The position numbers and the translations under genes were made by a program. This document shows positions 7,687 to 9,410 of a stretch of 19,230 nt of DNA, one piece after another; within the stretch, counting starts at the first letter, position 1, and each line of letters begins with the position of its first letter. The DNA comes from Octopus sinensis (taxonomy: Eukaryota). The stretch is taken from positions 1 to 19,230 of the forward strand of contig NW_021823925.1 in assembly GCF_006345805.1 (NCBI RefSeq), written 5' to 3'. Below the pieces are notes generated by a model. It searched no databases and was not told the origin of the DNA. It worked only from the letters and a program-made list of their open reading frames with translations.

Positions 7687-8606
7687 CTATGGTTTCTCTC
7701 CTGTATGAATGTTTTTATGAGAGGTTAAAGAGCGCAAGCAAGACAATGATTTACCACAAATATCACACTCATACAGTTTCTCTCCAGTATGAATGGATTT
7801 GTGATGAGTAAGGCTATGCTTATGGGAGAATGATTTACCACAAATACGACATTGATATGGTTTCTCTCCTGTATGAATGTGTTTGTGAGAATCAAGGTAA
7901 CGTCTTTGAGAGAATGACATTCCACAGACATCACATTAATGAGGTTTCTCTCCTGTATGAATGTATTTGTGTTTAGTAAGGCCTATCTTCTGAGAGAATG
8001 ATTTACCACAAATATCACAGTGATGTGGTTTCTCTCCTGTATGAATGGATTTGTGAGTAGTTAAATTACATTTTAATGAAAAAGATTTACCACAGATATC
8101 ACAGGGATATGGTTTCTCTCCTGTATGAATGGATTTGTGATAAGTAAGGCCAGTCTTTTGAGAGAATGATTTACCACAAATACGACATTGATATGGTTTC
8201 TCTCCTGTATGAATGTGTTGTGAGAATCAAGGTAACGTCTTTGAGAGAATGACATTCCACAGACATCACTTTAATGAGGTTTCTCTCCTGTATGAATGTA
8301 TTTGTGTTTAGTAAGGCCTATCTTCTGAGAGAATGATTTACCACAAATATCACAGTGATATGGTTTTTCACCTGTATGAATGAATTTGTGAGTAGTTAAA
8401 TTACATTTTAATGAAAAAGATTTACCACAGATATCACAGGGATATGGTTTCTCTCCTGTATGAATGGATTTGTGATAAGTAAGGCCAGTCTTTTGAGAGA
8501 ATGATTTACCACAAATACGACATTGATATGGTTTCTCTCCTGTATGAATGTATTTGTGAGAATCAAGGTAACGTCTTTGAGAGAATGACATTCCACAGAC
8601 ATCACT
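7687..8606 (-). pseudogene. 11 finger units downstream of the ZNF-B stop: [A*BCD][A*BCD][A*B'E]TAG
   Basis: In-register finger units with TAA at 8609-8607, 8273-8271 and 7938-7936, a 1-bp deletion near 8218, and a final TAG at 7689-7687. Confidence 0.9.
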
Positions 8607-9410
8607 TTAATGAGGTTTCTCTCCTGTATGAATGTATTTGTGAGTAGTTAAATTACATTTTAATGAAAAAGATTTACCACAAATATCACACTGATATGGT
8701 TCCTCACCTGTATGAATGAATTTGTGAGTAGTTAAATTACATTTTAATGGAAAAGATTTACCACAAATATCACATTGATATGGTTTCTCTCCTGTATGAA
8801 TGGATTTGTGAGTGGTTAAATTACATTTTACTGAAAAAGATTTACCACAGATATCACAGTGAAAAGGTTTCTCTCCTGTATGAATGGATTTGTGAGTAGT
8901 TAAATTACATTTTACTGAAAAAGATTTACCACAGATATCACAGGGATATGGTTTCTCTCCTGTATGAATGTATTTGTGAGTGGTAAGGCTACTTTTTAGA
9001 GAGAATGATTTTCCACAAATATCACATTTATATGGTTTCTCTCCAGTATGAACAGATTTGTGATAAGAAAGGCCAGTCCTTTGAGAGAATGATTTACCAC
9101 AAATATCACAGTGATAAGGTTTCACTCCTGTATGAATGGATATGTGAGAAGTAAGGCTGTGCTTCTGGGAGAATGATTTACCACAAACATCACAGTGATA
9201 TGGTTTCTCTCCTGTATGAAGGGATTTGTGAGAGGTAAGGTTACTTTTCTGAGAGAATGATTTACCACAGATATCACAGTGATATGGCTTCCTACCCGCA
9301 TGAATGAATTTGTGAACAATGAGATTTCCCTTATTAGAAAAAGTCTTTCTACAGATATCACATTGGTGTGATAACTTTTTTCTTTCTTTTGTCATCTCTT
9401 GAGGATTCAT
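8607..9410 (-). CDS. ZNF-B: tandem C2H2 zinc-finger protein, 267 aa, 9 intact fingers
   Basis: ATG at 9410 ([14 protein letters not shown]), then 9 x 28-aa fingers, then H-stop. The track's GTG start at 9434 is not a normal eukaryotic start. Confidence 0.88.
   Translation of the reverse strand: MNPQEMTKERKKLSHQCDICRKTFSNKGNLIVHKFIHAGRKPYHCDICGKSFSQKSNLTSHKSLHTGEKPYHCDVCGKSFSQKHSLTSHISIHTGVKPYHCDICGKSFSQRTGLSYHKSVHTGEKPYKCDICGKSFSLKSSLTTHKYIHTGEKPYPCDICGKSFSVKCNLTTHKSIHTGEKPFHCDICGKSFSVKCNLTTHKSIHTGEKPYQCDICGKSFPLKCNLTTHKFIHTGEEPYQCDICGKSFSLKCNLTTHKYIHTGEKPH

Follow-up and report, generated by a model that had tools for sequence, protein, structure and literature searches.

How does a zinc-finger gene come to carry the same in-frame stop codon three times, at a nearly constant spacing, within the very array that it terminates? 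The question is raised by a stretch of Octopus sinensis DNA (contig NW_021823925.1; the whole stretch of 19,230 nt is called the window below), which holds an octopus C2H2 cluster with three paralogs, Z1, Z2 and Z3. An initial annotation of Z2 had described a stop codon multiplied together with its fingers, and had proposed that the array went on expanding as untranslated DNA. The account favored here, with a probability of about 0.8, is that an old TAA in one degenerate finger was amplified by exchange as part of a larger block, which would have left an untranslated tail and a shortened protein. The genes concerned are as follows.

1266-1883, plus strand: Z1, an intact 205-aa ORF in which the first Cys of finger 1 is lost
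7656-9410, minus strand: Z2 as a whole, a member of the tandem C2H2 cluster
8607..9410, minus strand: the Z2 ORF (ZNF-B in the initial annotation), 267 codons with nine C2H2 fingers, terminated by the first TAA at 8609-8607
~16755-18330, minus strand: Z3, with two deletions, one of 2 nt in the A-run that follows the ATG and one of 1 nt in the seventh finger (net -3)

The Z2 reading frame starts with an ATG at 9410 on the minus strand and stops at codon 268. Its C-x2-C-x12-H-x3-H fingers, their 28-residue (84-bp) period and the TGEKP linkers identify Z2 as a tandem C2H2 gene of the Krueppel type. Pfam finds zf-C2H2 in nine stretches of the 267-aa ORF at 158 bits (cut-off 25.2) and zf-H2C2_2 at 249.5 bits (cut-off 40), and the post-stop ORF at 8271-8591 also exceeds the Pfam zinc-finger cut-off. 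In the Z2 array TRF detects a period of 84 with 19.7 copies, the linker anchors lie 84 nt apart, and a regex count returns 18 intact fingers. No KRAB-, SCAN- or BTB-type effector domain is found in Z2, where Pfam reports zinc-finger-type families only and just 15 residues precede finger 1.

An exact-record look-up returns no entry for the product of either Z2 (267 aa) or Z1 (205 aa). Vertebrate zinc-finger proteins dominate a protein search with the 267-aa ORF, which also yields an octopus match at 62% identity, and a search with the distal units A3-B'-T, defined below, places O. vulgaris, O. bimaculoides and O. sinensis at the top. Judged by these octopus relatives and by synteny with an O. 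vulgaris cluster, Z2 is a member of the coleoid cephalopod C2H2 expansion. Such lineage-specific expansions have been described at the level of gene numbers and expression (PMC12513265); a term search of the text of that study finds no mention of stop codons or pseudogenes.

The repeated stop itself is readily confirmed. The 27-nt motif CCTCATTAA(A/T)GTGATGTCTGTGGAATG occurs in exactly three minus-strand copies, each with a TAA. A scan of the whole window with CCTCATTAAWGTGATGTCTGTGGAATG matches 8589-8615, 8253-8279 and 7918-7944 (n = 3, all on the minus strand), and shuffled controls (n = 200, up to 3 mismatches tolerated) give 0 motif matches. The TAAs lie at 8609-8607, 8273-8271 and 7938-7936 on the minus strand, with spacings of 336 and 335 nt, in agreement with the positions first reported. 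The codon that follows was also read correctly: it is AGT in both proximal copies (A1 and A2) and TGT in the distal copy (A3). The homologous finger said to read CAT-CAG-TGT in ZNF-A is found in the paralog Z1.

1695..1778, plus strand: intact A-finger relative in Z1, with CAT-CAG-TGT at 1713-1721

This Z1 finger, different at 12/84 positions, is the nearest relative of unit A in the window outside Z2. Cutting the Z2 array into 84-bp units at the linker CATACAGG... gives, past the ordinary fingers 2-9, the order A1 B1 C1 D1 / A2 B2 C2 D2 / A3 B' T, followed by a truncated finger.

8295..8630, minus strand: repeat copy 1, made up of A1 (8630-8547; TAA, AGT), B1, C1 and D1
7960..8294, minus strand: repeat copy 2, made up of A2 (TAA 8273-8271, AGT), B2, C2 and D2; 335 nt
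7826..7959, minus strand: partial copy 3, made up of A3 (7959-7876; TAA 7938-7936, TGT) and the first 50 nt of B' (7875-7826)
7708..7875, minus strand: fingers B' (7875-7792) and T (7791-7708), common to Z3 and to the O. vulgaris gene V
7656..7707, minus strand: truncated last finger GEKP*HCNICSKSF*, which holds the older stop TAG 7689-7687

A three-way alignment defines a repeat unit of 336 bp, composed of four 84-bp fingers (A-B-C-D) and present in 2.43 copies over 817 nt (8642-7826). Its homology begins 12 nt upstream of A1, at 8642, and ends 50 nt into B', at 7826; the array once described as three copies thus has its three TAAs but not three full copies. Between copies 1 and 2 there are 5 substitutions and a single 1-nt deletion (identity ~98%). 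The deletion, of one A near 8218 in A2, shifts the reading frame and accounts for the 335-nt length of copy 2. Fingers four units apart differ at 1, 0, 1, 3 and 1 positions, far below the 15-27/84 that separate adjacent fingers in the same array; at a lag of one unit, the corresponding comparison gives 20-26. The 336-bp block is a head-to-tail higher-order tandem repeat whose copies are far more alike than neighboring fingers.

Both edges of the repeat fall within shared sequence. Over their first 50 nt no difference separates B1, B2 and B'; beyond this point B' departs from B and follows the B' of the neighboring paralog Z3, which points to a recombination junction at the end of the third copy. 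At the other edge, finger 9 and finger D have their last 12 nt in common. Unit A is an odd finger, PH*(S/C)...(Y/H)IH, with a K-to-M change (CGMSF) in the otherwise invariant CGKSF, and both A1 and A2 have lost the first Cys to Ser (AGT). The array as a whole contains 20 fingers, nine coding and 11 behind the first stop; six of them are near-identical C-type copies, and finger C2 differs from the upstream finger 6 at only 1/84 positions.

The paralogs place this structure in context. Z2 and Z3 belong to a direct segmental duplication whose flanks share 77-89% identity, and Z3 joins two of the units named above without the one that carries the stop.

16842..17009, minus strand: Z3 D-B' junction, with D (17009-16926) joined straight to B' (16925-16842) and the 84-bp A unit absent

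What Z3 has lost is the 84-bp A unit and no more. The loss returns B' and T to the frame of the fingers immediately upstream; the two frameshifts of Z3 sit further upstream. Finger and block turnover is routine in the cluster: Z3 has a 252-bp three-finger repeat of its own (units 2-4 versus 5-7, with 5, 2 and 1 differences, one copy being frameshifted), the O. vulgaris gene V has 2-finger repeats, and decayed fingers persist behind the Z1 stop (1884-2270). A TAG occupies the Tyr slot of a finger (GEKP*HCNICSK) in Z2 (7687-7689), Z3 (16737-16739), Z1 (~1881-1883) and the O. vulgaris locus (19290-19292). Since all three paralogs and the O. vulgaris genes stop at this TAG inside a finger, the usual terminus of the family is in turn an older nonsense codon. 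As a side observation, the +1 frame of the finger arrays is itself open for up to 263 codons (IFVVNHSL..., at 16949-17740 and 17794-18327, minus strand), and the O. vulgaris protein models P0121 and P0189 begin in this frame, a sign that frame-broken members get annotated.

The age of the repeated TAA can be approached through O. vulgaris. The window is syntenic with a locus on OX597842.1 (L002), with 90-95% identity outside the arrays, and this locus includes one gene with the same distal units.

19290-20930 of L002, minus strand: gene V, sixteen in-frame fingers, then A(TAA)-B'-T-TAG, then a foldback element

The first stop of V is a TAA at codon 464, while V is annotated as a gene of 507 aa. 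V has a single A unit with the same TAA, an intact TGT, the same CGMSF and the same B'-T-TAG context, and is without the A-B-C-D repeat; its A unit differs from A3 at 2/84 positions and from A1 at 2/84. The A-unit signature occurs once in the O. vulgaris loci L001-L003. A single A(TAA) with TGT in the same context shows the nonsense codon to be older than the amplification and A3 to be the ancestral copy. Whether V stands to Z2 as an ortholog or as a close paralog, the comparison identifies A(TAA)-B'-T-TAG as the ancestral single-copy state, and the amplification as a later and, at ~98% copy identity, recent event in the Z2 lineage.

Orthology in the cluster is hard to assign, as several Z1-type copies exist in the O. 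vulgaris region: segments of this type are found as inverted and direct copies at 90-95% identity (L002 1-6035 versus 11500-16887, and L003), and L003, reached via P0178 and ~165 kb away, holds Z1-type copies only. A Z2 ortholog is not found within L001-L003; the true ortholog probably lies just beyond the left edge of L002. A protein search with the 463-aa V product for orthologs in other octopus species is swamped by vertebrate zinc-finger matches and gives none that is usable. Divergence between the flanks of Z2 or Z3 and those of V is mosaic, ranging from 0.7% to 17% in 150-nt windows, which points to exchange between paralogs and blurs any dating. An attempt to date the amplification by flank divergence failed for this reason.

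The order of events proposed at first, a nonsense mutation followed by a duplication, a T-to-A change and a second duplication, can be followed only in part. That the nonsense mutation preceded duplication agrees with the single A(TAA) of V. The remaining steps rest on one shared site, with which a second conflicts: the site pairs are TGT/TAC in V, TGT/CAC in A3, AGT/CAC in A2 and AGT/TAC in A1, so that all four combinations are present. This four-gamete failure across V, A1, A2 and A3 cannot arise without one or more conversions, recombinations or repeated mutations, and fits no simple duplication tree. No unique crossover order was obtained, as several three-event paths fit and none is favored; the passage from a single A to the present array would have involved at least two exchanges, probably three.

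Nor does the expansion seem to have taken place on untranslated DNA alone. In Z2 (D2-A3-B') and in Z3 (D-B') alike, the finger next to the A slot on its upstream side is D, and this shared position suggests that D preceded the stop in the ancestor of the two paralogs. The amplified block would therefore have straddled the stop, contrary to the claim that expansion continued on untranslated DNA. Both Z2 copies of D are now behind A1. Some fingers that had once been translated, D at least, were thus probably carried behind the stop by the rearrangement, which would have cut the protein to nine fingers.

Some steps of this history are shown by the sequence comparisons. The degenerate unit A already had its in-frame TAA before any repeat existed. 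A four-finger, 336-bp segment including A is now found in 2.43 tandem copies, so that further stops lie on the upstream side of the original one, 335 and 671 nt away from it. The copying presumably proceeded by unequal crossing-over or replication slippage between near-identical 84-bp units, with one breakpoint in the 5' half that B and B' share and the other in the 3' end common to fingers 9 and D, and would have taken at least two events. Since then the copies have gained the Cys-to-Ser change (A1 and A2), the frameshifting 1-nt deletion of A2 and a few other changes.

What lies behind the first stop bears little sign of a coding role. Between the first TAA and the TAG at 7689-7687, eight non-A fingers keep the C-x2-C...H-x3-H signature, which A3 also retains despite its TAA. 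The signature scan thus reproduces the earlier count of eight stranded fingers. They do not form a single stranded frame, because the A2 deletion leaves three in the frame of the ORF and five in a shifted one. The changes between copies 1 and 2 comprise 3 nonsynonymous and 2 synonymous ones without a codon-biased pattern, and those relative to V, counted by hand from the alignments, comprise 5 and 2. The A2 deletion, the Cys-to-Ser changes and the K-to-M of unit A likewise speak for decay. An open downstream frame under purifying selection is not found here: the post-stop stretch contains the A2 frameshift, two further TAAs, Cys-to-Ser changes in A1 and A2 and a 3:2 ratio of changes. A3-B'-T diverges from V at 7/273 positions versus 61/658 in the adjoining foldback (Fisher p = 0.00015), a contrast that is not taken as constraint given the mosaic divergence along the locus; compared with the best-matching flanks (58/1947), A3-B'-T shows the same divergence from V (p = 0.85). 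The post-stop DNA of Z2 looks unconstrained on these comparisons, and we infer that translation ends at the first TAA and that 8606-7690 is 3' UTR or dead DNA in neutral decay.

The stranded fingers had also been viewed as a reservoir that one recombination or conversion event could put back in frame. A return of all eight would have to undo two Cys-to-Ser changes in addition to one frameshift and three stops, more than any single event could achieve. A single linker-to-linker exchange could at most rejoin B'-T, as in Z3. The reservoir idea thus has one real parallel, B'-T of Z3 standing back in frame, in a gene that itself has two frameshifts upstream.

Several other explanations of the triple stop deserve consideration. 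The stops might be bypassed, and the post-stop fingers made, through in-frame micro-introns, UAA-to-UGG A-to-I editing or ribosomal read-through. Splicing signals of a kind do exist: every unit contains a cryptic donor, TGTG|GTAAAT, together with an acceptor in the linker, CATACAG|GAGAG, and the two would join in frame. The linkers found one finger ahead of an A unit, in unit 9 and in D1, read CAG|GTGAGG and CAG|GTGAAA. The GGT-GA linker variant is not specific to A, however, being found also in other fingers of Z1, Z3 and V. Gene models offer some precedent, as the O. vulgaris model P0107 (L001 10001-11191) places a 90-nt GT-AG intron over a decayed finger with the acceptor ACAG|GAGAG, and the 507-aa model of V runs past the stop at codon 464; yet such introns may reflect a predictor stepping over stops. 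The sole intron that fits a 507-aa V product is a GT-AG intron of 117 nt, and neither the resulting product nor the 463-aa one is on record. Coleoids are known for heavy A-to-I editing. Work on their transcriptomes allows for stop-loss editing of UAG to UGG (PMC8382921), but UAA requires two edits, and the predicted RNA fold around A1 is at the level of shuffled sequence (z = -1.0), offering no unusual structure for ADAR. Any bypass would have to get past three stops and the frameshift that lies between them and make up for two lost Cys residues, and the post-stop changes are without a synonymous excess. With its frame broken, its 3:2 changes and its unremarkable RNA fold, the locus makes bypass very improbable, in agreement with the low rank already given to read-through and double editing. 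A special form of this idea, that the UAA in A is a conditional stop in coleoid neural tissue, relieved by double editing or by a skipping micro-intron so as to add fingers, with their number tuned by exchange of the A cassette, which has been amplified in Z2 and deleted in Z3 and is single in O. vulgaris, is barely credible. Reassignment of TAA to Gln was ruled out, as there is no other in-frame TAA or TAG upstream of the terminal stops in Z2, V and Z1, over 267 codons before the first TAA of Z2, 463 before the TAA of V and 205 of the Z1 ORF.

Arrays of 84-bp tandem units are hard for short-read assembly and the 1-nt deletions of Z2 and Z3 fall in short A runs, so that the triple repeat might be a mis-expanded artefact. 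The copies nonetheless differ at six positions and so are not duplicated reads, the repeated tract spans just 817 nt, and the stop-bearing A unit is also present in the independent O. vulgaris assembly; an artefact is highly improbable. That the block was duplicated intact and the TAA arose later, spreading between copies by gene conversion, would suit an array in which conversion is active, as the four-gamete failure and the near identity of C2 to finger 6 indicate. This order can scarcely be upheld against the single A of O. vulgaris, which has the same TAA, CGMSF and B'-T-TAG without the four-finger repeat. The main account, an old TAA amplified with its block, is compatible with a further reading that differs from it only in whether the 267-codon ORF is used: Z2 may be a wholly dead pseudogene without any 3' UTR. 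Neighboring Z3 has 2-nt and 1-nt deletions, finger 1 of Z1 is without its first Cys, no recorded gene has the exact product of Z2 or Z1, and 6/20 fingers of the Z2 array are near-identical C-type copies. Against these stand the nine intact fingers of the ORF, a start context shared with V, and the annotation of the equivalent ORF of V, which has the same stop, as a gene. Complete loss of function is therefore a serious possibility, if still somewhat less probable than a used ORF.

Individual elements of this history have counterparts in better-known zinc-finger genes. In PRDM9, the finger array is a minisatellite-like row of 84-bp units whose copy number is changed by unequal exchange. PRDM9 arrays are open and under selection, whereas the exchanged units of Z2 include a stop. 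Mammals are known to have KRAB zinc-finger genes in which an in-frame stop has cut the array short and consigned the remaining fingers to the 3' UTR; in human ZNF252 the 3' UTR holds eleven fingers, complete or degenerate, while the array is open in other mammals (PMC2865497). Z2 resembles ZNF252 in the row of fingers behind its stop, eleven in ZNF252 and eleven units in Z2, and in having relatives whose array is open. It differs in being an octopus gene without KRAB and in that its stop-bearing finger was multiplied, giving three stops at a fixed period. Within a single mouse KRAB-ZFP gene or pseudogene, combinations of 2 to 7 consecutive fingers can recur, as a block does in Z2, and change is faster past a premature stop (PMC5363842). 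That study concerns genome-wide fingerprints and singles out no case with a terminator inside the repeated block (PMC5363842).

Z2 is thus a case of ordinary array turnover that combines known mammalian processes, the extra detail being the terminator within the repeated block. The case is a clean and datable one of arrays that gain and lose fingers through exchange at the DNA level whatever their coding status. With the A(TAA) finger single, tripled and precisely deleted at three loci, a single step of unequal exchange can shift a terminator and so alter how many fingers are translated. As the same processes are already documented in mammalian KRAB clusters, no new question is raised, but a caution for annotation follows: octopus zinc-finger models may cross such stops by invented micro-introns.

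Other features of the window are of interest in their own right. Between Z2 and Z3 lies a reverse-transcriptase fragment of a retroelement (Pfam RVT_1, E = 2e-14; 12245-13342, plus strand), in a stretch with no counterpart in the O. vulgaris locus L002. A tandem duplication of ~840 nt at 99% identity (2924-3759 and 3745-4586) contains a small ORF per copy, with no Pfam match. The arrays themselves abut a further element on their 3' side.

6994-7655: near-perfect, MITE-like foldback of ~660 nt, abutting the truncated last finger of Z2

The inverted arms of this foldback measure 177, 53 and 50 nt, and its RNA is predicted to fold at -401 kcal/mol (z = -40). The same foldback adjoins the truncated finger of Z3 (16032-16702) and of O. 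vulgaris V (L002 18474-19255). If transcribed as part of a 3' UTR, it would form a long double-stranded RNA. Near its center it carries (TTAGGG)3/(CCCTAA)3.
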